Shown: positions 13,302 through 64,000 of the stretch, one piece after another
How the letters are laid out: the number at the start of each line of letters is the position of its first letter
How positions within the stretch are numbered: the stretch's first letter is position 1
Assembly: GCA_003427395.1 (NCBI GenBank)
Contig: BFEA01000007.1
Location: forward strand, 2,264,850 to 2,328,849
DNA length: 64,000 nt
Reading direction: 5' to 3'
Origin: Chara braunii
Lineage: Eukaryota; Plantae; Charophyceae
The notes under the pieces: generated by a model
Told to the model about the DNA's origin: nothing
The model's input: the letters and a program-made list of their open reading frames with translations, nothing else
Database searches by the model: none
Position numbers and translations under genes: made by a program

Positions 13302-13449
13302 TGGTACCCGCTATTCCACGCGCGGTAGTCATGTGCCGCAGGGAGAGTTGCACGCCATAGCTGAAGACGCCATCGAAGAAGAAGTCCGCCATAGCGGATC
13401 CGCAGGTTGAAGAAGCCGCCGCGCGCACCTGCAGAGAAGACAACGACGA

Positions 13450-13515
<66 letters not shown>

Positions 13516-14049
13516 GTTCACTACGTACCTGCGTTGAAGACATCGCTACAGAGAGAGAGAGAGAGACAAGATTGGTTCACTACGTACCTGCGTTGAAGAC
13601 ATCGCTACANNNNNNNNNNNNNNNNNNNNNNNNNNNNNNNNNNNNNNNNNNNNNNNNNNNNNNNNNNNNNNNNNNNNNNNNNNNNNNNNNNNNNNNNNNN
13701 NNNNNNNNNNNNNNNNNNNNNNNNNNNNNNNNNNNNNNNNNNNNNNNNNNNNNNNNNNNNNNNNNNNNNNNNNNNNNNNNNNNNNNNNNNNNNNNNNNNN
13801 NNNNNNNNNNNNNNNNNNNNNNNNNNNNNNNNNNNNNNNNNNNNNNNNNNNNNNNNNNNNNNNNNNNNNNNNNNNNNNNNNNNNNNNNNNNNNNNNNNNN
13901 NNNNNNNNNNNNNNNNNNNNNNNNNNNNNNNNNNNNNNNNNNNNNNNNNNNNNNNNNNNNNNNNNNNNNNNNNNNNNNNNNNNNNNNNNNNNNNNNNNNN
14001 NNNNNNNNNNNGAGGCAACGAGCAGGAAGTCGGCCGCCATAGCCGAACC

Positions 14050-14172
14050 GGAGTTGATCGGGGGTCGACCAGGCATTGACCGGACGTTGATCGGGCGTTG
14101 ACCAAAGTTGACCGGGGGTTGACTGCAGCGTTGACCAAAGCATTGACAAAGGCGTTGACCACGATTTGACCA
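14050..14172. repeat. About 12-bp period TTGAC(C/T) motif array in the retroelement leader
   Basis: About 10 units, seven of them perfect TTGACY. Confidence 0.75.
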
Positions 14173-14829
14173 AGCTGCAACCGGTATAATCTTGCCAAGC
14201 CTTCAGCATATCCCCTCGCCCTATGGATGTGCACACACCCTGTGGTGCTTGCTGTCAAGTCTGTCTGTCTCTTCTTTCTGCATCGAGTCTCTTTTGTCCA
14301 GGTGATAGGACTCTGTGGATGAAGGATAGGGCCTTGTTGACCAAACCCACACGGGCTGAGTAGGGCTAAAGACAGTGTCTGACGACTCGACTGTCCTGGA
14401 GGACACGAACCCTCCCAAGGACCGGTACTGACCGGCGAGCTGCTCGATGTGGCACGGTAGGCCCAAAATCCAAGCTGTGGGCTGCACAACAGGCCGTCTA
14501 AGTCTTGAGAGGACCTGCTGATCACGTCATCCTGTCTGTGACGTTAAAGAATTCCTGAGGAGTTACTGAGGATCTCCTTAAATGCCTCCTGATCAGCAGC
14601 AGGTCCTGTAGTGACAGCCATAGATTAGGTCCAGGCTAGTGACCCTAGTTGACAGGATCCTGTTCGGATTTTGTAGTCCTTAGATCGAGTCAATAGGTCT
14701 TGTCCGTCAGAGGGGTAGAGTCTAAGTGGTGAGAAGTGGAACCGTTGCCCGGTTGTGCACCTGACACCATGGTTGACACACGTGGTGGGAAGAGTACTAC
14801 CCCTTACACGCAGGCTCAGTAGGAGCAAT

Positions 14830-19067: not shown

Positions 19068-22000
19068 GTGTTAGTGTCTCTAGGCGCTTCCCTCACAGGC
19101 CTGGCAGAAGAGTTGAAGGAAAGAATGCCAGTCTGGGCCAAGATGAAGAGAGAAGGTAAAGGACAACTCTTGATAGCAGATGTAGAGATTTTCATAGGTA
19201 GAGTGATGGCCCTTATAGACAGCGGGGCTACCCGTAGCTATATTACCAGTAAAGCGTTGAAGTAGCTAAAGCTTAGCTTGAAAGTCCACAAGCTAGAAGA
19301 ACCCGTAGTCAGCATCCTCGTTGATAATCGCACTATGCGCATCGAGGATTACATCGAGGGAGTCCAGGCATATTTTCGCCCAGAGGCAGATGGGAAGGTA
19401 GAGAGAGTTCTCCATTCCCCGACTCTCCTCGTGGAAGATGATCTCCCATTTGACATGGTGTTAGGAATGGATTGGGGAGAGGCAGGAGCCACGCTGCACT
19501 TGCGAGAGCATGAGTGTAGGCTACCCAGACCGTCAGGTGGTATCAACAAAGCCCGCCTGTTTCATTTGTCAGGAGTAGATAACTCCTTAGCACATTGTTG
19601 TCTCACTGGTCTTTCGTTTGCATGATTAGTTCAGGAGCAACTAGAAGATCAGGTCCTTGTAGCTTATGTTAGGCATGTTACTGAGCCTAAGAAAGTGGAA
19701 ACACTCGACCCCACTATTGCCAAGCCGCTAGAAGAGTACGCAGGCTCCTTCAAGAGTAGTTTTGTGTCCCATCCAGCATTGCATCGAGATAGAGCCCGAC
19801 AGTAAAACTCCAAAAGAGGCAGTTTATAGAATGTCTCCTAAAGGATTTGTGTAAGCAGTTAGAAGAACTCATCGAGAAGGGTTGGTTTAGGCCCACTTCG
19901 TCTCCATTTGGAGCACATGTTCTCTTTGTGAGAGTTGAGAATGTGCATTGACTACAGGGGTCTCAACTTCGTTAAGTCAAGAGTCCCATCAGATTGAGGT
20001 CCACCCTGTACAAAACGGCGTTCAAAACTAAATATGGGCATTACGAGTTTATAGCAATGCCCTTTGGACAAACTAATGCGTCAACCCCTTTTCAATGTTG
20101 TATAAACATATTGTTTAGGTCGTGGCTATATAGAGTTGTAGTAATATATTTAGATGATATTTTGATCTTTAGGAAGACCCTCCAGGAGCATGACGCTCAT
20201 TCAATGCAGATCTTGGAAAATTCTGAGAGGCAAATTTCAAAATCAACGCGAAGAGTGCAAGTGGGCCAAGACCAAAATCCTGTACTTGGGCCACGTCTTA
20301 GATGGTGATGGCATTATACCCTGAGGACAGCAAGATTGCAGCGATTAGGGACTGGCCAACTCCTCGTACACTCACAGAGTTAAGATCGTTCCTAAGACTG
20401 ACCAACTATTACAGAAAATTCGTTAGAAAGTTCTCTGTTGTCGCTGCTCCCCTTTGTGGACTGCTAAAGAAAGAAGCAATCTGGATGTGGGGCCAGGACT
20501 GTACCTCGTCCCTGAGGAAATTTAAACGGGCCTTTGTAGAGTATCCAACCCTCAAGGTAGCTGATCCATCTTTACCTTTCGTCGTCACTACAGACGCAAG
20601 TCGTTATGGCATTGGTGTTGTTCTACAGCAAGATGATTACAATGGGTACAGACTCGTAGAGATCATGTCTGCTAGGTTGCCTTCAGAAAAGGTAGCAGCC
20701 TCCATTTACAAGAGGGAACTCTACGCTCTCAGGCAAGCATTAGATCACTGGAGACACTACTTGCTTGGGAGGCACTTCAAAGTCTATTCAGACCACGAGA
20801 CACTCAGGTGGCTGAAGACGCAAGCCAAGATGACACCTAAGCTTACTAGGTGGGCTGCAGAAACAGATCAGTTCGACTTCGAGCTCAAACCCGTTTAAGG
20901 GAAGTACAACGTGGTTGCAGATGCTCTCGGTAAAAGGGTTGATTACTTTGGAGCAATCGTCCACTATCTAGAGTTAGGATCCGATTTGCAGCAAAAGGTA
21001 AGCAATTTGTATGCTCACGACCCTATCTACAGTGACCTCCTCAAGAAAGTAAGGAAGGCCACAAAGAGTGAACCTAACTACTGCACCACAAACGGGTTAC
21101 TGTTTGAGAAGACAAGTGTCGTAAACAGGCTATGCATTCCCAATACTAAAGAGAGCCGAAGTCTAATCCGAGGGGAATGTCATGATATAGAAGGGCACTT
21201 TGGCTGGCAAAAGACATTAGCCAACTTAACACGTGCCTACACGTGGTCTGGCATGAAAGTCGGTTGTATAGAGTACGTACGCAGTTGCAAAGTATGTCAG
21301 CGCAACAAAACTACGACGTGAACCCCATTGGGTCTTTTCAGACCCTTGCCTATCCCTTCAGGACCCGGAGAGTCTGTGACCATTGACTTTATGGATGTTG
21401 GGGTCAGTAGTAGGCATGGCAAGAGCCAAGTCATGGTTATAGTAGATCGTTTTAGCAAGTACGCATTTTTTTACCGCTTGCCTTATGAGGCACGTACGGA
21501 GTTAGTCATAGAAAAATCTTTTGATTCTTGGGTAAGCGAGCATGGTATTCCGCTATCCATAGGTAGTGATAGAGATACGCGGTTTACTAGTCACCACTGG
21601 CAGAAGCTCATACGAGTTTATGGCTCGAAGGCGTTGATGTCATTCGATCGTCTTCCAAAGACTAACGGCCAAACTGAACAGATGAATAAGATCTTGCAAC
21701 AGATACTTAAGATGTATTTTAGACCAGATCAGATTTAACTGGGATGAGATGCTCCCTAAGGTAGTTAGCCCCTACAACAATAGTGTCCATCTAGCTACAT
21801 GTCGAACTCCTAACGAGTTGCACAAGTCCTTTAGACCACGCAGGCCGTTTGAAGGACTGAATCGTGACCAGATACAAAGACTGCCACCCGAAACTAGACA
21901 ATTTGCCCTACAGCATGAGAAGGAAATCGCAAAAGTGACCGACAATCCAAGAAAGGCTCAACACCAAATGATAAACCAAGCTAACAACATCGTCGGGCAT

Positions 22001-36862: not shown

Positions 36863-38906
36863 GAATTTCATGAAAATTTCCGGAAATCGAAGAGATGGCA
36901 GAAGAGATAAGGATGAGTTCGTAATACAACATGGAAGATTTCTTGACGTGTTTTCAAAATTAAAAGAAAATCAAAAGGAATTCGAAATCAAAATAGAAAA
37001 CTAATTCTGAAATTCAGACTTTACGATGGAATAAAACCAAGAATTAACTGGAAGCCGAGTAGAAATGAATTGAGAGAAATTTGAAAATTATTGAAGGTCA
37101 AATCAGAAAATTGTGAACGTATTTCAAGATGGAGAAAGATTTCACAGTAATTTCAAAAGAATTTTGAAAGAATGTGCAGAATTGCAAAATTTTATGGGGG
37201 AAATAAAACAGGAGTTACTTTGAATTCAGAAGAATTGAATTTGATGAATTTCTGAAAAATAAATTGAATTCTGAAAATAAATAACGAAAAGAATGGACAC
37301 AATAAAGAATTTTATATAACTTTCAAACAAAGATGCCAGAATTAATTTCAGTTCCCGGCGTTGGTAGAAAAGAGGATGAGAAATAATCCTATTGAGTTAA
37401 GAGGGAAATTTTGCAGGATAGGATTGGCAGAATTGCCAGACGAGCAAAATTGAGAAAACACACATGTCATGCGCATTCGGAATTTTAGATGGTGCGACCG
37501 ATTAGGAAGAATGCTAGAGGAGAGAAGGGGGAATGGGGGGAAGGAAGAAAATGACGAGAAAGATGAGAACTTCGAGAGGTCCTTCCTCCTAGTCGAGGAA
37601 GGTCTTCAGTTAACCCCTGAAGGGTCTTCTCGTTCGTTCCCCCAGTGAAACGACGAGGTCACCAGAAAAAGCATGCAGATGATGTCGCCAATGATGATGA
37701 TGATGATCTTTGTTGATGATGATGACAACGTAGATGATGCTTGGTGATGCTGATGAAGGAGATGAGATCAATCTCAACTGTTGTGGAGAGAGATGGGCAG
37801 GAGAGATCTCGTCAAGTCATTCATGAGCGTCACTGATTGGATGACACAGATTGATGATGATGAGGATGGTGACGCCTATCAGGTTGATCCAACTTGATGG
37901 TGGTGGTGTCCACGCGGGCAAAGCACAATTCACGTTTCGCGTTGGTGGATGAACAGCCCAACACTTCGTGAGTACTACTTCGTAATGAGATGAAGAGCCG
38001 ACATTGAAGAATCAAAAGCAACGTAACTGTGAACGCTTGGCTGGTATACGCCACTTATCGCCGTGTATCCGAAGGAAGGAACACAACACCTCTAGCTTGA
38101 AGTCCTGAAACGCTAGAGGGTCGATAAGACATGTTTTCAAAGTTTGTATTGGTACACGAAACGAAAGTCAGATGAGCGTTTGGCCTTCTGCTGCACGCTC
38201 CAATGCCGTGCGTGTGGGGCACGGGTGAGAACACGCGCTCGGTCTTCTTCGCAGTGGCACTTTCCCCTCCCTCCCAGATCGCCCGCAATTGCGATCGCGT
38301 TGCCCTCCCCCGCTGGCATTCCCCGCCACGCACGCACCCGCCCAGATCCTAGTCCCGCTGCACTCCCGATTGACCTGTCCCCCCATTCCATTCGGACACT
38401 GAACGGGACACCTTCTCCAAGGGTGGTTTTGCTGCCGTGGGAAGGTGAAACAGGTGGGGGCAAGCGGAAGTGGAGGGCACAATTGCGGGGGAAGAAGCAC
38501 CACAGAGCGAGCAGGAATGCGCGTGGGGAGATGCGAGCGGATTGCGTAGTTGAGGGGAGGTCGGAATCAAGCGGGGAATCGGGATCGGGACGTGAGGGCG
38601 CAGTTGGGTGTCGGGGGAAACACAGTTGGGGTGAAAGATGACGGGAGGGGGGAGATCTGGATTGGAAGCGGGAGGGTGCGAAGGTTAGGGGAGGGGGGGA
38701 AATCGAGCTGGGAGAGGCAGATAGGGAGCGGGGACAGAAGTGGGGGAAAAGGGGGAAGGGGAGGGATATGCGATTGCGCGTGGTGGGGGGAAACGCGGCG
38801 AAGTAAGCTGACGTGGCCGCTGCCGCCGTAGGGATTTCGATTGTGAGTGGGGGGGGGGGGGGGGGGGCCGCTGCCGGGGGAGGGGGGGGGGAGGGGGATC
38901 TAAGGA

Positions 38907-42204: not shown

Positions 42205-42701
42205 CAAGCAAGCGGCACGAGCGCATCACGGAGCGTATCACAGGCCCTCTCGAACGGCCGCGCGGACCACCCACCGCCTTCAGATCTACACGCCTAGGTA
42301 GGCTATCAGATGACCAACACATTTAATTGCGCCCTACAACCGCCCTCGCAGTACATCACAGTCTCTGGATCGGATGCTCAATCAAACCACAGCGAAGGGA
42401 ACTCCCAACGCACCTTAGAACGACACAGAAAGCTCACAATCACGGACCGCACCGAGAGGAAACACAGGACCGCACAGCGATAACCAGAGGCAGACGGACG
42501 TACGGACGGACAGACAGACAATAAACCAGCAGTAGCTCAACAAAGCATGTCTACAGCTAAAGAATAAGCATGTTCCTGGCATAGTGCTAAGAAAGCTACA
42601 TTGAACAAACTGAAGACTAACCAACGAAAATAACAAATGAAGTAGTACAGATCACTGCGCAACGTGACGGGAAAGATGGAACCGTCAAGCTTTTTACTCA
42701 C

Positions 42702-45046
42702 CTGCAGCGCGCCTCCGCCGAGAGGATGAGTCGGTGACACAATGGGCGGGTTATCCGACAGGGGAGAGATAGAAAGCCTAGCCATCGCTTTCGCCTCCAT
42801 CGAAAGAGAGAAATTAGAACCATGTGTCCGTGCAATAGAGGACGGCTCCTTCCCTGTCGTTCGCGGAGTAGACCGACTCGTCAAGGGACCTCCTCCTCCT
42901 CCTTCTACCCCTCCTCCCCCTCCCCCTCCCGCTCGGGGTGCCGCAGTTTCTGTGCCTGGAGATGTCCCCCCTCCCATGCATCCTACACCTTGATTGTCAT
43001 CGAATTCCATCAAGCGCAGTGGAGTCTGTTTCACAGGTGTTGATGCGAATGGGAGAGTAGGACTCACAGACAGCCCCGTCGTCACGGACCCCTCACTCCC
43101 TGATACGGATGTTGACGGCCCTACCCCTCCACCCCCAATCCCCCCAATTCCGATGATGGGGGGATGAACAGGGGTCCCGTTCGCCGATGAAGCCGGGTTG
43201 TCCCAATTATGATGATCTACGGTGGCCGGAGCGGAAGAGGGGCGAAAACTACTGGTAGGGGGGGAGTGGGCGGAGACCCCGCGCGAATAGCGGCGTCCCG
43301 CCGGCCCCCCTCCCCCGGTACCTCCACCTCCTTCCTCCCCCCGCCCACCTCGACCTGATCCAGGACTATCGTTCCCCCCGCTGCTGCTACTCCCCACGGG
43401 CGCCCCCTGGCCCCCCGTCCCGGGAACTGAAAGACGCGGGGAGCCCACCCCCGTTCCCATCGCTGTGGATGATGGGTCTCCCGTACTCAGAGAGCGCCTG
43501 AAAACCACCTCTCCCGCGCGTCGTCCGGAGGAGCGCGGTATACTCATCGGAGCTGTAGATGACCGCGGCCCCCGTCCGAACCCTCCTCCTCCCCTTTCCC
43601 CCCCCCCAACGCTCCCTTCCGCTGGCGATCCCGCTTGCGACGAAGGCGAGGAACCGGGCCAACCTCCGGAACCTCGCGGGGATACAATCTGCCCGTGTCC
43701 CGACGGGGATGTCCCGTCTTGAGACGATGACCTCGATGGCGAAGGAGGCTTTCCCGTGAAGCTGTAATTGCCATGGGAGGGGGAGGACGGCGACCCGACG
43801 TCCCCCGGCGGGCGAAAAGTGGGTAGGCGAGGCTTGGACAAGCGGCGCCCGGACGGTTGCTGTTGCGCTCCAGCGCCTCCACCTTCCCCTCGCGATACAG
43901 ACCCATCAGGTGATGGGTATGGCGACGACAAGACACCGACCCTCCCACCACTCGCAGGTCCATTCGAAGGCGGGGAGCAGTTGGACGCGGAGGGGCTCCC
44001 CACATAGTCCGGGATGATGCACGGCAAGATGGTAGGCGCCACTTCCAGCGCTGTCACCCCAGCTGAGTGTCGGTACGACACCGACAGGCATAGGCGCCCC
44101 ACTGGAGTATCCACAGGACTCAGCTTATGGACCTCCATGTCCGACGCGTCTGCTTCAGGGATAGGCGGCGCAGAAGACCGCACCCGGTAGGTCAATGAGA
44201 GCCCCCCAGGATGGTGGGCGTGTGATCTGGCGAGTCGCACGAGTCTGTGGGCGGGAAGAGTCCGAACGAGACAAAACAAGGACCTCAACATGATGACGGC
44301 TCTTTTATAAACCACCGGAATCTCCATCACGTGTGGCGGAACCACGCCGCTAGATGACGATCCTCCTCCCCCGAGCACACTACCTCCACCGCCACCTCCG
44401 CCGGACGTCCCCACTCTGGTCGCGGCGTTATATGCACTGGCGGTAAGAACACCCCCTCCCCTAGGGGTCAACGTGATGCCCCCCCGCCCACCGCCACCGC
44501 TAACCTCTCCCCCCCTTCCTCCAGAGGCCCCCGGCCCCCCCTCTCTCCTCTTCCGCTCACACTGTACTACCCATCTTTCGAGTAACGTACTACCAATCCG
44601 GCCGCCACCACCTCTACTACCTCTGTGGTCCTCCCTGCCAAAACTTGCTCTTCGATCCCCATAGCCTCCTCCTCCCCAATCAACGCCCGAACCAATAAAC
44701 GAGGACGACACGTCCATCGCCGCCGAGGACCTGTGCTCGAGAAATATGTCGATGATCATGGGTTCCAACTGGCTCCTTCGCCATGGATCGGCCTCCCGGC
44801 GGACGACTTCGGAAGGGTCAAGTTGGATGTTGAACCAGCTGTTTGCTGCATGCTTCGCAGCTGCTGCTGCTGCCCCCAGAGAAGATCCTGCAGCCTCAGC
44901 TACAGCTCCTGCTCGCTGATGAGAGGGCGCATTCGACAACCGTGAGATGGACCCGATCCGAGCGTCAATAATCACGTGTAGAACCCGCGAGAAAAACTCC
45001 GTCACAATCTGGTCCATGGCCCCGCTACCTTCTCCATGCCCCGCCA

Positions 45047-45047
<1 letters not shown>
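42702..45047 (-). CDS. ATG13: Autophagy-related protein 13, first coding exon (HORMA domain plus Gly/Ser/Pro-rich disordered region)
   Basis: Plant ATG13 HORMA motifs DQIVTEFFSRVLHVIIDAR, WFNIQL, PMIIDIFL, LLERWVV, YKRAVIMLRSL..VRTLPAHRL, PVDTPVGRLCLSVSYR and IIPDYVGSP. The frame is intact for 782 codons to a strong phase-0 donor CAG|GTGAGT at 42702/42701; read-through would stop at 42537. Confidence 0.92.
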
Positions 45048-45100
<53 letters not shown>

Positions 45101-47178
45101 NNNNNNNNNNNNNNNNNNNNNNNNNNNNNNNNNNNNNNNNNNNNNNNNNNNNNNNNNNNNNNNNNNNNNNNNNNNNNNNNNNNNNNNNNNNNNNNTGTGT
45201 GTATCACACGCCTGCTTGCTGTTTCACCCAATCTGAGCATATGCTTCTCCCTTTCTCCCAGTTTTTTTCTCTCTTATTCTCCCTCCGACCGAGGTAAACG
45301 ACAGCACAATCAATCCCCACCTATAAAAGGAGGCTATGTTGTTTTAACACAGGCACGGCGCACGTCATTTCCCAGATGGTGGATGGAAAGCACATCCCCC
45401 ATGGGCGGACGAGTAACAGACTCAAGTCCTAAAACTTGGTCTCCCAGAGGATTCTTCACCCGAAAAAATCAGGTCTTTACGACCACACTTCACCATGTCG
45501 TTTCTGTCTCCAGCCCCTTCGTCTTTCCTCCGCCATGGTCTCCCTCTTCAATCTCTTCGTTTTCCTGCGTCTTCTCCGCCTCCAACTGCTCTTCCTCATC
45601 CTCCTATCCACTACTCTCAGCTTCGGACTTATCAACAGACAATTAAAGTGAAGCACACTCGCTCACCATCTCCCCACTCGCCAATCGTCGGCTGATCGAG
45701 TATTGCCGCGATCAGCAACCGCGATTCTCTTCCGGGCAAACCACCAGATTGCAGCGCATGAACCCATTGATAATGATCAGGAATGTAGTGAGCATACCGA
45801 TAGATCCGTTCACGGAAAAAACGAGCGAGAAAGCGTCCTATCAGCAGTCATCACGCCCTGGTTCGGTTCCGAAGGATAGACAGCAAACTAAAGAAATTAA
45901 ATGAACAGACCAAAAATAATCATCAGTTCGACATCCGAATAACCAGTTGATGCATAATTACCCACATAATGACAGTCCTTATACTGCAACAACCGTGAAC
46001 GCAAAGGTAGATTCACAGTCAGCCTCTCTCCCACACAGACCCCCTCCTCACCATCCTCCGCGCCTAAACACCATCTTTTCCCTTTCCAACCATGCTACTC
46101 CGCAGACCCCCTCCCCTCCTCTCTCCTTACCCAGCCCGCCTCCCCACTAAATTTCCACTTCTTCACCACCCCGCCCTCCTCTCTCTCATGCCTCATCCCG
46201 ATTGCCCACGAATAGCACTTATTCACCGCCACGCGTGGACGATGACGTCCGTACATGTCATCGTTGCGCAGGGCCATGCCAATCTTCTCTATATGATGTC
46301 CCGAAGAACCCGCCCATACATGGCAAAACACCATGATGATTTTGGAATCTCGACGCGACAGGAGGCTTCGTTCCAGGTCCAGACCACCAGAGGCTACCAC
46401 TCTCCTACCTCCCAACCGGGTTCCGTGGTGCGAGCGACACAGTGGTAGGTTGTGATCGAGTCCTACAATGGAACGAGTCCCAGGAGCCGAAAAAGCGTCT
46501 GGATGCAGCTCCTGTGACTGAATGGCAGACCGTACACCCAGTAATTGTGCACGAGCAGACCAGAGTTCGATTCGGTAAGCAAAGTACGGCCTGGACCCAC
46601 TGCCCGGCGGCTGGAAACTGATGTTGGCCACAAAAAACGGCCAACAGTGGTTGGAAAGAACTTGCCGCGTTTCGTTGGGACCCCACCGCTGCCCTTGACT
46701 ATAGGCACTGGAAACGGATGGACAAGCCCGAATAGGAAATCCCCCCCGGGGTGTTTCCTGAAAAGGCAAGTCGGCCCGGGGCTGTGGTCCAGGCCCTTCT
46801 ATCGGCCTGCACCAGGACATGTCCGTGTGTGGCCGTACACGACCAGGTGTGGCAGGNGCCGCACAGGTACCGTGCAGCACACAACGGCCTCACAGGGTCC
46901 GCTCGGCCGGTGAGGCGCGACTATGCATGGAAATGACCGTTGGGAGCATCGGCGGATGTCCCCCCCTCCCACACTCCTCCCGTTGGTACCACTTTTCCCC
47001 GACGCGGACATCCATAGTGGGAGTGCAGTTACGAAGCAGTGACGGGAAGCCATAGCCGTCGACAAAGGAGGGGGGTTTGGCGAGGAGCACGGGTCCGCGA
47101 AGGGAGTCCGCTTGTGAAGTGGCAACGACAACTGTTGTGCAAGGGTCGACACAGTTCCCATCACGGTCACAGCGTGGT

Positions 47179-48646
47179 CATGTGTCCATCGGATGTTGGC
47201 AGTTCGGAGGACGAGTGGGAAGACATGATGTTCATGCTCGTTCTCCTCATGACGCAGTGGGTGAACAGGCGCAACGCTGCGTCCATGGCCCTGCTTGAAG
47301 CTATCGCCATCACCCCGTTCATGTTCCGGGATGTGTCGGGGGCGCTTACGATGCTCGCAAGGGGGGTGGTTCACGGCATGGCGTTGAGCTGCTTGGCGGA
47401 GCAGGAGTTGGGAAGACACATGCAACGGAGAAGGCGATTGTGGATGGTGGAGCGTAGCGGAGGTTTGTGGAAGGACCTTCAAAGGGTGGGTGTAGAGCAC
47501 GATAAGGTGTTTTTGCGGTTCTGCAGATTACTGCGACCACAGTTTTTGCAAGTTCTTAGGCGCATCGGGCCCCGTATCTAGCGTTCGCCTACCAATTTTC
47601 GGTTGCCTATACCAGTCGGGCAGAAGTTTGCTTGCGCACTCATCCGGTGGGCAACGAGTGGATACTACTGGCAATCCGCCCACGGTTTGGGTATGGGGCT
47701 TGCGAGGGCATTGAGAAGCAACGAGGACATCGCAGATGCTATCCTCCACGAGTACGTCCACCTCCTCTAATTCCCTACAGGACGTCGTTTGGAAAAAGTG
47801 TTAAATTCTTTCGAGACGAAGGGGTTCCGCGGATGTGTGGGGGCCATCGACTGCACATACATGTACATCGATAAGTCGAGGGGGACGCGGTCAGAGTGCT
47901 ACTATCATCACACTGGAGACTTCTCGATCGTCGCGCAGGTCGTGTGTGACAGCGAGTGCAGAATTGTCAGAGTGTATGTCACCTGCCCCGGGTCGGTGCA
48001 CGACTCGCGTGTATTGCGGATGTCGCCATTGTACCACAACACCATGGCAGGCAGAGGTGTGTTATGTGAGGGTGGAGCTATCATGCATGATGGAAGACAT
48101 GTCACTCGTTACGTGCTTGGCGACGCCAACTAACCCCTTCTCCCGTGGATCATGACACCTATGGGTAGATTCGCGAGAACTAATGCAGATCGGACATACG
48201 ACGAGTGTCACGTAGCGGTGAGATCTTGTATAGAGCGGATATTTGGACAATTGAAGAGCGTATGGAGGAATTTCATCCGCACTCAAATTGCGAACTTTGA
48301 AACCCTGCACAAGGAATTCATGGTTGTGTGTATACTACACAACCTCATGATTGAGCACAGGGTGGATATCGAGCCTGCACTGTTGAACCACAGCAGCGAC
48401 AGTGACGGGGAGGGTCCACCACGCAACCCCCGTTCCCGTCGACACCGCCGTCGGCGACTGCCACGTCATATTCCTGACCTCAACATTGAAGTCATGGTGG
48501 AGATTGATCCCAGTTATGGCTCCCACCTCAGAACGAGGGTCAGGGCTAGCTTGATTGATCATGTGATCATGTGGCCCATCATGTTAATGTTCATGGTGCA
48601 CCGGTGCCATGTCCGTGGCGATAGTGCATTGGGATTGCTGGGGTAG
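47179..48646 (+). pseudogene. Harbinger (HARBI1-like) DDE transposase, disrupted
   Basis: FLRFCRL..F, ALIRWATSG, GCVGAIDCTY, QVVCD, PGSVHDSRVL, YVLGD, RSCIERIFGQLK..W and CILHNL; stops at about 47580 and 48131 plus frameshifts. Confidence 0.92.
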
Positions 48647-49435: not shown

Positions 49436-49499
49436 TTGATTGTTATTTTTATTTGTGGATGCATTCGCGGCTTGGTATATGTATGAATATGTGTGTATA

Positions 49500-50261
49500 C
49501 AGGGTAACCGGCGTTCAGGACGGGCCGAATGCCCGAACCCGAACGCCCGAACGTCCTAGCCCCCCTATAGACACGTTTGCCCGTTCGGACTGAACGCGGA
49601 CAAAAAAAAAAAAAAAAAAAAAAAAAAGTCGTAAAAAAAATCTGAAACAAATATATGTTATGCAAACAGACAAACCGAATTACATTTGTCTCAGAGTTAC
49701 CTCCAAATTCGATACCAAATTCGAATTAAAAATAAATAACGAAAAATAAAAAATAATAATAGAAACAAAAAATTTGAAGAGAGAATTATAATCAATGTGC
49801 GGGCAGACACGTTTTAAACACCTCCATCTTTGAAGATTTTTTATTTTTTTTTTGATCAGTGAAATTCCCGGAAAATTCATAGGTGTGTATCTCACATGAT
49901 ACAAAACTCATTTAAAAAACATAAAAAAAAAAAAATAAAATTTAGGCCCCGAAACAAAGTGAAAACAAAAAGAGAAAAGAGAAAAAAAACAAAATAGTGA
50001 GTGGGTGAGCACGTTTTGACACCGACATCTTTGGCGATTTTTTATTTTTTTCTGGCTAAACAAAAGTATCTCAAAATTTAGAGGCATGTACGTCACATCA
50101 TAGAGAACTCACAAAAAAACTTTCAAGAAAAACTAATAATTTTTAGGCCCCGAAATAATTTTTGGCGGGGGGCCGAACCTCTTCAGGTTCGGCCCCAAAC
50201 GTGACCCTGAACGTACGGAGGTTGGCCCGGGGGCCTCCGTATGTACGGGCTGGTAACCCTG
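49500..50261 (+). mobile_element. Tc1/mariner-like MITE with CAGGGT ends in a TA context
   Basis: TA|CAGGGTAACCGGC ... GCTGGTAACCCTG; related copies at 61891 and 62558-63283. Confidence 0.85.
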
Positions 50262-50293
50262 TGTATATATGTATATATATATATATATATACA

Positions 50294-50349
50294 TTTGTTG
50301 TCCTCTTCTCCCTCTCTGCCTACGGTTTACCGGGCAGTTCTATTTGACG
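50294..50349 (+). mobile_element. 5'-truncated copy of the hammerhead-bearing short element (3' tail only)
   Basis: Identical to 63359-63414 and flanked by (TA)n on both sides. Confidence 0.85.
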
Positions 50350-51019
50350 ATATATATATACACAAACTTGTCAGATCAGAAAATCCAACTACAACCAAAC
50401 AGGGGGCAACATGCAACAACACAAAAAAAAGATCGTGGATGACAAGTCCCATATGCAAGCACCGCCCCTTCTTCACACGCCAAACGACGGGACAAGACCA
50501 ATCAGGACAAAACTCTTCTCTGCAAATAAAACTATATACACACGTGACCGTATTCGTAATCAAGATGTGGGACAAACCAACGGGGATGCAGACAAAAGTG
50601 CCAAAAAACAAACGTAATAAAACAAATGAACCTCGAGTGTGACACTTCATACCCCGTGAACTCCATACCCGATAAACTCTACGTTCACACGGCGAGACAG
50701 AGAGAGGAAGAAAGCCACGACTGCTAGAGTACACGGTAGACAAAACCTCGTTTGAAAAGCGAGATTATGAACTGGTGTGAAACACACATGTTATCGATCT
50801 ACGACACAACGTTGGTGCTGCATCCAACCCTCCTCACGACAAAAAAACACACCACATCCTCATCGCGGGCCAACCCCCGACCCAACCTAGCAATTCCCGA
50901 ACCAGCCAACATGGCACAAGTACTCTGCCCGCCAAATCGGCGGAATAAAAAAAAAAATGGTCATCATCGTGAAGCTCCACCCGTCCTCCATATTGTACGC
51001 CCCTTCATAGTGCACGTCA

Positions 51020-61706: not shown

Positions 61707-61792
61707 AACTGCCCGGTAAACCGTAGGCAGAGAGAGAGAAAAGGACAACAAACGAGAGGCTGTGACGAACTGTTTCGTCGGAGTTTCATGGA

Positions 61793-61797
<5 letters not shown>
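61707..61797 (-). mobile_element. Hammerhead-bearing short element, truncated within the core (ATGAG...CGAAAC)
   Basis: Reverse complement ATGAGTCCATGAAACTCCGACGAAACAGTTCGTCACAGCC...; abuts a long (TA)n. Confidence 0.85.
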
Positions 61798-61828
<31 letters not shown>

Positions 61829-61832
61829 NNNN

Positions 61833-61890
<58 letters not shown>

Positions 61891-62452
61891 CAGGGTAACC
61901 GGCTTTCGGGACGGGCCGAACGCCCGAACATATGGGACCCCTTGGGGATGCGTTCGGTCGTTCGGGCCGAACGTGGATAAAGAAAAAAAAAAAAAATCAT
62001 CAAAACAATCTGAAACAAAGATATGTTATGGAGAAAAATAAATTAAACAAGATTTGCCTTAGCATTACATCCGAATTCCTTACCAAATTTAAAATTAAAA
62101 TAAAATACAGAAAACAAATACTAATAATAAAAATAAATAAAAATAAAAGGTGAATTAAATTTAGTGAGTGAGGGAGCATGTTTTCCACACCGCCATCTCT
62201 GGCGTTTTTTCATTTTTTTTTTTGGCATAGCAAAATGCCCTGAAAATTTACAGATGTATTGTTCACATAATACAAAACCCACTAAAAAAGTTTCAAAAAA
62301 TAATAATTTTTTTTAGACCACGAACTAAAGTGAAAACAAAAGTAAAAAGTCAAAAAATGCGTGGGCGAGCACGTTTTGACACCGCCATCTTTGGTGATTT
62401 TTAATTCTTATTTGGCTTAGCCCAATGACTTGAAAATTTACGGGCATGTACC
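61891..62452 (+). mobile_element. CAGGGT MITE, right end missing
   Basis: CAGGGTAACCGGC start; colinear with 49500-50090. Confidence 0.8.
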
Positions 62453-62467
62453 TATATATATATATAT

Positions 62468-62549
62468 AAACAGTTTGTCACAGCCCCTCGTTTGTTGTCC
62501 TATTCTCTCTCTCTGCCTACGGTTTATCAGGCAGTTCTATTTGTGACAA
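62468..62549 (+). mobile_element. Hammerhead-bearing short element, truncated at GAAA
   Basis: AAACAGTTTGTCACAGCCCCTCG...TTCTATTTGTGACAA between (TA)n tracts. Confidence 0.85.
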
Positions 62550-62557
62550 TATATATA

Positions 62558-63283
62558 CAGGGTCACCAGCCCGTACGTACGGAGGTCCCCGGGCAGACCT
62601 CCGTACGTACGGGCGTTCGGGGTCCCGTATGGGGTCCGAACCCGACGGCGTTTGGACCCCGCCAAAAATTATTTCGGGGCCTAAAAATAAATATTTGTTT
62701 TTGAATTTTGTTTCGTGAGTTCTCTATGACGTGAGGTACATGCTTGTAAAGTTTCAAGTCATTTGGATAATCCAAATAAGAATTAAAAATCACCAAAGAT
62801 GGCGGTGTCAAAACGTCCTCGCTTACATATTTTTTCACTTTTTACTTTTTAGTTCGGGGTCTAAACAATTTTATTATTTTTTGAAATATTTTTAGTGCGT
62901 TCTATATTATGTTAAGTACACATCTGTATATTTTCAGGGCATTTAGCTATGCCAAAAAAAAAAAAAAAAATCACCAAAGATGGCGGTGTCAAAAACATGC
63001 TCGCGCACTACTAAATTTAATTCTCTTTTTATTTCTATTTATTTTTATTATCAGTATTTGGTTTTCGTATTTTATTTTTATTTCAAATTTGGTAAGGAAT
63101 TCGGATGAAACACTCTGGCAAATCTTGTTTAATATAGTTTCCTCCATAACATATCTTATTTTCAATTTTTTTTGATGACTTTTTTTTTTTTTTGGGTTCA
63201 CGTTCGGCCCGAGCGGCCGAACGCATCCCCAAGGGGTTCCATACGTTCAGGCGTTCAGCCCGTCCCGAATGCCGGTTACCCTG
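62558..63283 (-). mobile_element. Complete CAGGGT MITE, inverted
   Basis: TA|CAGGGTCACCAGC ... GCCGGTTACCCTG|TA. Confidence 0.88.
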
Positions 63284-63307
63284 TATATATATATATATAT
63301 ATATATA

Positions 63308-63415
63308 CTCCTGATGAGTCGGTGAAACTCCGACGAAACAGTTTGTCACAGCCCCTCGTTTGTTGTCCTCTTCTCCCTCTCTGCCTACGGTTTACCGGGC
63401 AGTTCTATTTGACGA
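63308..63415 (+). ncRNA. Hammerhead ribozyme core within a short repeat element
   Basis: CTGATGA at 63311-63317, stem II GTCGG-tgaaact-CCGAC, GAAAC at 63335-63339, and 3' hairpin CTGCC-TA-CGG-ttta-CCG-GGCAG. Stem I is cut off by (TA)n. Confidence 0.8.
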
Positions 63416-63421
63416 TATATA

Positions 63422-63475
63422 TAGAACGCATGTTTTGCAAGTATGAAGTTATCGGTTCAAGTCCGATCGTCTCCA
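63422..63475 (+). pseudogene. trnA: Mitochondrial-type tRNA-Ala(UGC) 3' fragment (NUMT)
   Basis: Anticodon arm CATGT-TTTGCAA-GTATG and T arm ATCGG-TTCAAGT-CCGAT; the 5' acceptor strand and D arm are missing. A mirror copy lies at 63822-63875. Confidence 0.8.
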
Positions 63476-63487
63476 ATTTCCCCGTGA

Positions 63488-63520
63488 GCCCACGTAGCTC
63501 AGGTGGTAGAGCATTCCTCA
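63488..63520 (+). pseudogene. tRNA 5' half, probably mitochondrial trnT (NUMT)
   Basis: GCCCACGTAGCTCAGGTGGTAGAGCATTCC with D arm GCTC/GAGC. The anticodon is absent, so identity is inferred from the known streptophyte mitochondrial trnA-trnT linkage. Confidence 0.6.
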
Positions 63521-63546
63521 TGTTGCCATGAGAGGGACCCATCTTG

Positions 63547-63587
63547 AGCCCACACAATAAATCCAAGAACTCCAATACTTATCATAG
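63547..63587 (-). pseudogene. cox1: 41-nt mitochondrial cox1 exon with flanking intron ends (NUMT)
   Basis: Encodes (A)MISIGVLGFIVWA. Upstream is a group II domain V/VI end (GCGGTTCGGAGGGCGGG...CCCGACCCCTAT); downstream is a group I-like P1. A mirror copy lies at 63710-63750. Confidence 0.85.
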
Positions 63588-63882
63588 ATAGGGGTCGGGA
63601 GTTGTGTTTTCCCGCCCTCCGAACCGCAAATGGTATTTTNNANNANNNNNNTNNTNNAAAATACCATTTGCGGTTCGGAGGGCGGGAAAACACAACTCCC
63701 GACCCCTATCTATGATAAGTATTGGAGTTCTTGGATTTATTGTGTGGGCTCAAGATGGGTCCCTCTCATGGCAACATGAGGAATGCTCTACCACCTGAGC
63801 TACGTGGGCTCACGGGGAAATTGGAGACGATCGGACTTGAACCGATAACTTCATACTTGCAAAACATGCGTTCTATATATAT

Positions 63883-64000
63883 CGTCAAATAGAACTGCCC
63901 GGTAAACCGTAGGCAGAGAGGGAGAAGAGGACAACAAACGAGGGGCTGTGACAAACTGTTTCGTCGGAGTTTCACCGACTCATCAGGAGGCTGAACCCTC
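63883..64000 (-). ncRNA. Hammerhead ribozyme element, most complete copy (runs off the window end)
   Basis: Reverse complement GAGG-gttcag-CCTC CTGATGA GTCGG-tgaaact-CCGAC GAAAC AGTTTGTC: a stem I hairpin abuts the core. Confidence 0.82.

Follow-up and report, generated by a model that had tools for sequence, protein, structure and literature searches.

We analyzed a 64,000-nt stretch of the genome of the charophyte Chara braunii (contig BFEA01000007.1 of assembly GCA_003427395.1, positions 2,264,850 to 2,328,849 of the forward strand), hereafter called the window, and focus on a hammerhead ribozyme motif at its far end and on the short, (TA)n-embedded repeat that carries it (Table 1). The motif is a 29-nt sequence, CTGATGA-GTCGG-TGAAACT-CCGAC-GAAAC, which is found exactly at 63311-63339 on the plus strand and at 63958-63986 on the minus strand; a stem II of 5 bp (GUCGG/CCGAC) closed by a 7-nt loop (UGAAACU) separates the two halves of the core, of which CUGAUGA (63980-63986) and GAAA (63959-63962) are both exact on the minus strand. 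Elsewhere in the window, no further match to this 29-mer was hit even with up to three mismatches allowed, and dinucleotide shuffles of the window gave zero matches. When a generic motif (CTGANGA, a stem of 4-6 bp, a loop of 3-8 nt, and GAAA) was searched for instead, exactly the same two sites were found in the window, against a mean of 0.015 per window in mononucleotide shuffles. The hammerhead motif is hence real and non-random, and the invariant core and stem II that had been noticed at both sites in an earlier inspection of the letters (the sequence-only reading) are borne out exactly.

Table 1. Features of the hammerhead-bearing repeat and of its surroundings. Positions are those of the window; L006 denotes scaffold BFEA01000392.1.
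Feature	Position	Strand	Remarks
Longest copy, cut by the window end	63882..64000	-	first base of the stem I hairpin to 3' end TTTGACGA, then TATATATA
Stem I hairpin GAGG(GUUCAG)CCUC	63987..64000	-	directly 5' of the core; type III topology; Hammerhead_3 alignment
Hammerhead core + stem II	63958..63986	-	exact match; same 29-mer in a complete phage type III hammerhead
Stem III 3' strand CAGUUUGUCAC	63948..63958	-	Hammerhead_3; stem III pairs not fixed, 5' side beyond the window
Mirror-image arm	63308..63415	+	element starts CTC-CUGAUGA right after (TA)n; Hammerhead_3 19.9 bits
(TA)n tract, 5' junction of the plus arm	63284..63307	.	sequence
Non-element flank	63424..63873	.	both palindrome arms; N-speckled centre; organelle-tRNA-like pieces
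5'-truncated copy	62468..62549	+	starts AAACAG, no core; 92% identical to the longest copy; ends TTTGTGACAA
5'-truncated copy	61707..61797	-	starts inside the core (AT|GAGTCC); 93% identical; two stem II mismatches
5'-truncated copy	50294..50350	+	3' 57 nt only, between two TA tracts
Other TA tracts	61797-61890, 62453-62467, 50266-50292	.	sequence
MITE-like copies	62558-63288; 61891-62453 (inverted, partial); 49496-50262; L006:52534-53277; L006:42589-43351
28S rRNA fragment	37908-38059	-	150 nt, isolated; LSU_rRNA_eukarya 77.6 bits, model positions 2825-2984
ATG13 autophagy gene	42537-45047	-	Pfam PF10033, E 1e-31
Gypsy RT-RNase H fragment	20302-20898	+	best matches 75-87% identical to Chara braunii proteins
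DDE_Tnp_4 transposase fragment	48152-48646	+
U6 match	46252-46326	-	weak, partial
U6 retro-pseudogene	L005:11181-11278	-	A-rich tail

While the sequence-only reading had counted two hammerhead copies, the two sites turned out to be the arms of a single perfect palindrome. The arms (63308-63648 and 63649-63989) are each 341 nt long, 100% complementary without any mismatch, and joined with no spacer around a symmetric pattern of N bases at 63640-63657. Each arm comprises the element (~108 nt), TATATATA, and ~220 nt of unrelated flank, and the two cores therefore represent one locus, because independent insertions cannot share the flank; inclusion of the flank also makes the inverted pair at 63308-63989 unlike an inverted insertion of the style known in Penelope-like elements (PLEs). 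The arms diverge at 63308/63989, where the left one runs into (TA)n and the right one continues as GAGGGTTCAGC, a proper stem I. The plus arm cannot be a self-cleaving ribozyme because the 5' strand of stem I is absent there ((TA)n-A|CTCCTGATGA). The assembly dates from 2018 and consists of short-read scaffolds, and the palindrome is most likely an artefact of assembly or gap filling, in which the repeat may have served as the joint; alternatively, it could be a very recent inverted duplication. In the flank, organelle-tRNA-like pieces at 63424-63520 (mirror, 63777-63873) gave a weak match to the tRNA model of Rfam (21.6 bits), ARAGORN called no tRNA there, and a 43-nt piece is 100% identical to a sequence on another scaffold (L011:17583-17625).

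Self-BLAST of the window brought out five copies of the repeat, namely those at 64000-63870 and 61797-61707 on the minus strand and those at 63308-63427, 62468-62557, and 50294-50358 on the plus strand. The longest copy is 100% identical to the plus arm of the palindrome wherever both exist, and the copy at 50294 is 100% identical over 65 nt with its TA tail included. In the copy at 62468-62549, the 3' end TTTGTGACAA is followed by (TA)4 and then by the terminus of a sequence resembling a miniature inverted-repeat transposable element (MITE), and in the copy at 61707-61797, the last ~15 nt past GGGCAGTT are replaced by unique sequence. We also searched 343 kb of other Chara DNA, which had been collected through protein look-ups around gypsy-like genes, and found one further cluster, in which two truncated copies stand in tandem over (TA)13 on scaffold BFEA01000392.1; in these 343 kb, there was no copy beyond this pair and no hammerhead at the Rfam gathering threshold.

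When the seven copies (five from the window and two from BFEA01000392.1) were aligned, they were 92-100% identical to the longest one and showed five different 5' ends, each against a TA tract, and every junction lay in such a tract. By contrast, a single 3' end followed by (TA)n is common to six of the seven, the copy at 61707 being the exception; the youngest copies end with TTTGACGA and older copies with TTTGTGAC(A/G)A, written together as TTTG(TG)ACGA(TA)n. None of the seven passes the stem I hairpin, and the maximum extent is ~131 nt from the 3' end. Within a microsatellite, this combination of a constant 3' end and 5' ends at varying positions is the hallmark of target-primed reverse transcription. 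The copies at 50294 in the window and at L006:53442, on different scaffolds, share the 5' end TTTGTTGTCC, and this internal start may reflect joining by microhomology or a site at which copying preferentially stops.

The element has no open reading frame (ORF), and a search with ORF translations across it gave no match. No direct repeats of the size of long terminal repeats (LTRs) flank it, no site resembling a tRNA-Met primer-binding site (PBS) occurs within 20 kb, and a head-to-tail array of hammerhead-bearing units was not seen, the copies being dispersed and truncated. Also, scans of GTDB genomes with the element tail and with the 29-mer gave no match. The claim of the sequence-only reading that a short, (TA)n-embedded, self-cleaving retroelement lies here thus holds as far as a non-coding family, headed by a hammerhead and with PLE-like ends, is concerned, whereas the LTRs and the PBS of an LTR retrozyme are absent.

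Directly 5' of the minus-strand core, at 64000-63987, we confirmed the hairpin GAGG(GUUCAG)CCUC that had been proposed to stack on CUGAUGA. It abuts C3, is found in the minus arm only, and has a folding energy of -5.4 kcal/mol by itself. With this hairpin as stem I, the topology would be that of a type III hammerhead, in which the 5' strand of stem III and the NUH cleavage site would fall at position 64001 or beyond, past the end of the window; the type III fold would predict (G)UGACAAACUGU-H directly before GAGG, i.e., ...ACUGU-H. The Rfam check that the sequence-only reading had suggested came out in part. At the gathering thresholds of Rfam, no hammerhead was detected in the window, but at E-value thresholds, the Hammerhead_3 model (RF00008) aligned to 63953-64000 on the minus strand at a score of 32.8 bits, with E-values of 1e-4 when 1.7 kb were searched and of 0.004 over the whole window. 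Of the 54 model positions, this alignment spans 9-54 and lacks only eight; it is marked as truncated on the 5' side by the window edge, and Hammerhead_3 was retained by Rfam as the best member of the hammerhead clan at this site. The plus-strand site reached 19.9 bits with an E-value of 0.44.

A positive control was provided by a scan of metagenome and IMG/VR contigs with the 29-mer, which hit two phage contigs only (L001 and L002, identical to L013 and L014 of IMG/VR; positions L001:8195-8223 on the minus and L002:3461-3489 on the plus strand). There, a type III hammerhead is complete, running from CUGGUC over a stem I hairpin and the core to GAAACCAG, and shares its core, stem II, and loop 2 with the Chara sequence letter for letter; it scores 53.6 bits and hence exceeds the gathering threshold of 48.5 bits. 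The shortfall of ~21 bits in Chara relative to this control is about what the missing strand would contribute. The phage hammerhead differs from that of Chara in having a complete stem III with a GUC site, in its other stem I, and in its intergenic position between phage ORFs, and no similarity between the phage contigs and the Chara element was found outside the ribozyme. Judged from the model score, the phage control, and the stability of the stem I hairpin, type III is favoured as the better of the two folds that had been proposed, in agreement with the preference expressed in the sequence-only reading.

Taking these results together, we consider it reasonably probable (roughly 0.6) that the locus holds one copy, cut by the window, of a retroposed, non-coding element that is abundant in Chara braunii, that the first ~55 nt of this copy would be a type III hammerhead, and that PLEs would mobilize the element; among possible partners, the Penelope-like retrotransposons known to bear hammerheads in Chara braunii are the most likely ones. 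A master transcript would cleave itself immediately 5' of GAGG, at a site beyond the window, and the product, ~119 nt of RNA followed by a (UA)n tail, would retain stem I, the core, and stem II. A Penelope-like reverse transcriptase (RT), which we infer to belong to the hammerhead-bearing Chlamys-2 or to the endonuclease-less PLE-X family, would then begin copying at the 3' end of this RNA, primed by a 3'-OH within a (TA)n tract, in keeping with the observed pattern of insertion. The common 3' end and the staggered 5' ends would result if the RT often stops early, and most copies would for that reason be dead stubs that lack part or all of the ribozyme. The master would be either the 3' end of an autonomous PLE or a short, non-autonomous element in its own right.

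Several features of PLEs reported by Craig et al. (2021, PMC8557442) are relevant here; namely, PLEs show a high frequency of 5' truncation, partial tandems, adjacent truncated copies in inverted orientation, and insertion into microsatellites, which are (TA)n for Naiads and (CA)n or (C)n for Chlamys. According to the same source, Chlamys is present in Chara braunii at very high copy numbers, Chlamys-2_cBra is equipped with a canonical hammerhead at its 3' side, and an endonuclease-less element of the PLE-X type in this alga bears hammerheads as well. The element described here is thus similar to Chlamys-2_cBra and PLE-X in its host, in a hammerhead near the 3' end, in 5' truncation, in insertion into simple repeats, in high copy number, and perhaps in the occurrence of partial tandem or inverted copies. 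It differs in that those elements are several kb long and protein-coding, while the Chara stubs are no longer than 131 nt and all lie in (TA)n. The suggestion in the sequence-only reading that the family might be undescribed in this lineage is hence only partly right, given that hammerhead-bearing Chlamys and PLE-X elements have been published for Chara braunii (PMC8557442).

A further likeness is found in Athena and Coprina, endonuclease-less PLEs (Gladyshev & Arkhipova 2007; Arkhipova et al. 2017, as summarized in PMC8557442), in which a hammerhead stands beside a terminal simple repeat matching the repeat at the insertion site. By analogy, this suggests that an RNA tail may anneal to exposed repeat DNA, although the repeats of Athena and Coprina are telomeric and at chromosome ends, whereas that of Chara is an internal, self-complementary (TA)n. 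Non-LTR retrozymes of metazoans and the hammerheads in the pseudo-LTRs of PLEs (Cervera & de la Pena 2020; Li et al., preprint, 10.64898/2026.07.22.740005) are comparable in being short, non-coding, and thought to be mobilized by PLEs. They are, however, tandem arrays in animals with one type I hammerhead per unit and are derived from PLE pseudo-LTRs (10.64898/2026.07.22.740005), in contrast to the dispersed, microsatellite-embedded, and probably type III element of Chara.

Against a PLE-mobilized element with a type III hammerhead, a number of observations have to be weighed. The window stops before the 5' strand of stem III and the NUH site, and the minus-strand ribozyme, with its 32.8 bits, scores below the gathering threshold. 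The support by covariation in stem II that the sequence-only reading had looked to is absent: only three copies reach stem II, two of them are one locus, and the third (61707-61797) is broken, with two mismatches in stem II and CUG missing. A 117-nt stub folds no better than its shuffles (z = -0.01), with one small 3' hairpin, CUGCC...GGCAG. Furthermore, no ORF for an RT or an endonuclease exists in the window when ORFs of at least 150 aa are scanned with Pfam (ORFs overlapping the N run at 13407-14525 were skipped), as had been noted before; what the scan did return was limited to ATG13 and to fragments of a gypsy RNase H and of DDE_Tnp_4, and the lack of such an ORF would be anticipated if the copy is truncated or non-autonomous. 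The proposed partnership with PLEs is drawn from the insertion pattern and the literature, published PLE hammerheads are of type I (Li et al., preprint, 10.64898/2026.07.22.740005), and the targets reported for Chlamys (PMC8557442) are (CA)n and (C)n, not (TA)n.

The last point bears also on whether a separate short family exists at all, since the copies might instead be 5'-truncated 3' ends of the published autonomous PLE, either Chlamys-2_cBra or of the PLE-X type, in which case the finding would be already known. All seven copies would fit as tails of such an element, whose canonical 3' hammerhead, very high copy number (for Chlamys), and frequent 5' truncation are described in PMC8557442. 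Nonetheless, all seven end within ~131 nt of the 3' end and none enters upstream PLE sequence, and the (TA)n targets do not match those reported for Chlamys; we therefore regard this explanation as unlikely, albeit one to be taken seriously.

An improbable variant is that the ribozyme would be completed by the 3' end of the element itself, in a head-to-tail or circular RNA of ~120-125 nt that would be copied by a PLE, with the DNA end of a (TA)n tract priming on the (UA)n tail. The older copies (62540-62549; L006:53285-53296) end with GTGAC(A/G)A, which is complementary to UUGUCAC of the 3' strand of stem III, and the younger copies have a 2-nt deletion in this end (TTTGACGA). Both kinds of end bear on whether joined units or circles of the RNA could complete the ribozyme, UUGUCAC being the distal part of the stem III 3' strand. 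If this were true, no smaller RNA that replicates or retroposes in the manner of a retrozyme would be known, and its copying by the RT of an endonuclease-less PLE would be an internal-microsatellite analogue of the attachment of Athena to telomeres.

Less a matter of the family than of its ribozyme is the other fold that had been considered, a minimal type I hammerhead of the kind in animal PLEs and non-LTR retrozymes, cut after GUC at 63950 and with GAGGG/CCCUC as stem I. The bases required for it are present, and its whole drawing, at -13.1 kcal/mol, is no worse than that of the partial type III (-12.7 kcal/mol), so that energy alone is not decisive between the two types. Its stem III, ACA(GUU)UGU-C, is a hairpin of only 3 bp with +1.4 kcal/mol by itself, however, and its stem I leaves positions 1.1-1.3 and 2.1-2.3 unpaired; as the sequence-only reading had stated, pairing is only distal, across an internal loop of 9/5 nt. 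Lunse and co-workers reportedly described in 2017 a dimer mechanism for minimal PLE hammerheads, but a rescue of that sort is unavailable here because the type I stem III is not self-complementary. Even though PLE hammerheads are normally of type I (10.64898/2026.07.22.740005), the above defects and the retention of Hammerhead_3 as the best clan member leave the type I fold improbable.

A complete or fragmentary LTR retrozyme of the plant type, with type III hammerheads in its LTRs, Ty3/gypsy enzymes as helpers, and a circular RNA, is very unlikely at this locus. A type III-like hammerhead in a streptophyte and the gypsy remnant in the window (RT_RNaseH at 20302-20898) would be in line with it, and plant LTR retrozymes (Cervera et al. 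2016, PMC4918200) share with the Chara element a type III hammerhead, the lack of coding capacity, and the green lineage. These plant elements, however, are characterized by type III hammerheads in LTRs, a PBS, a polypurine tract, and 4-bp target duplications (Li et al., preprint, 10.64898/2026.07.22.740005), none of which the Chara element has; direct repeats of ~300-400 nt, the size of such LTRs, are lacking, as is a PBS-like site within 20 kb, and staggered 5' ends in (TA)n, i.e., a target-primed signature, are seen instead of the duplications.

We give equally little credence to the repeat being cargo of a DNA transposon, carried by an adjoining TA-targeting MITE or a Helitron and not retroposed. 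Every copy does lie in a TA tract abutting the terminus of one ~730-bp element with terminal inverted repeats, and Helitrons insert at AT; relative to the MITE, however, the repeat is found on both sides and in both orientations, with (TA)n always in between and with a different length each time, neither 5' TC nor 3' CTRR is present, and elements that move by cut-and-paste show the reverse of a constant 3' end joined to varying 5' ends. Finally, a chance motif or a pure assembly artefact without biology, for which the palindrome around N bases as a mark of unreliable local assembly would speak, is scarcely credible in view of the same family on a different scaffold, the expectation of 0.015 motifs per window, and a stable stem I hairpin exactly where type III requires one.

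As to the genomic neighbourhood, the MITE-like sequences form a family of ~730-770 bp that is TA-flanked and has the termini CAGGGT(A/C)ACC..., and every hammerhead stub is in a TA tract abutting such a terminus, on either side and in either orientation. Two of these copies form a 1.4-kb foldback (61891-63288). No genes are called at 45-55 kb, and no gene-like ORFs are present at 55.6-64 kb. The isolated 28S ribosomal RNA (rRNA) fragment is within the range of an annotated 414-aa gene; by analogy with PLE-X elements of spike moss, which target 28S, it is conceivable that this fragment is a transduced flank of ribosomal DNA. The annotated 836-aa product of ATG13 differs at its C-terminal end from the uninterrupted ORF. 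An 836-aa representative protein matched the ATG13 ORF at 100% identity, and its gene is placed on BFEA01000007.1, a scaffold of 8.04 Mb that extends well beyond the window; over 23,126 nt, the sequence recorded there agrees with window 31922-55047 without a single mismatch, and a window position p corresponds to p + 2,264,849 of the record. Neither the U6 pseudogene of the window nor that of L005 has an adjoining hammerhead.

In conclusion, we have identified in Chara braunii a family of short, non-coding repeats that insert into (TA)n tracts with a fixed 3' end and staggered 5' ends and that, at the locus examined, are headed by a hammerhead core. The sequence-only reading was right in kind, in that it recognized a PLE-like retroelement with a self-cleaving ribozyme, and is partly supported, while the novelty was overstated for a window-cut, palindromic locus; of its two ribozymes, one is the palindromic double of the other, and neither of the visible copies is complete in the window. 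The element would probably fit neither class of retrozymes, having a probable type III ribozyme together with a PLE-like insertion signature. In the current scheme, type III hammerheads go with plant LTR retrozymes and gypsy enzymes, and type I hammerheads go with animal PLEs and non-LTR retrozymes. If the type III fold and the PLE-style mobilization both hold, this charophyte family would join the ribozyme type of plants to the insertion mode of animals, and it would do so at an informative position for the origins of retrozymes, namely in a close algal relative of land plants.

The possible role of the ribozyme may be viewed in the light of R2 and other non-LTR retrotransposons, whose 5' ribozymes resembling that of hepatitis delta virus (HDV) are said to have been described by Eickbush and Eickbush in 2010 and by Ruminski and colleagues in 2011. 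The R2-type HDV-like ribozyme belongs to another ribozyme class and another retroelement clade but resembles what is proposed for Chara: cleavage takes place at the 5' edge of the ribozyme, which remains part of the RNA downstream and fixes where the template begins. The Chara element would offer a simple test of what a ribozyme does in a retroelement. Its ribozyme would determine where the template starts, and this would explain why no copy exceeds the cleavage product in length.

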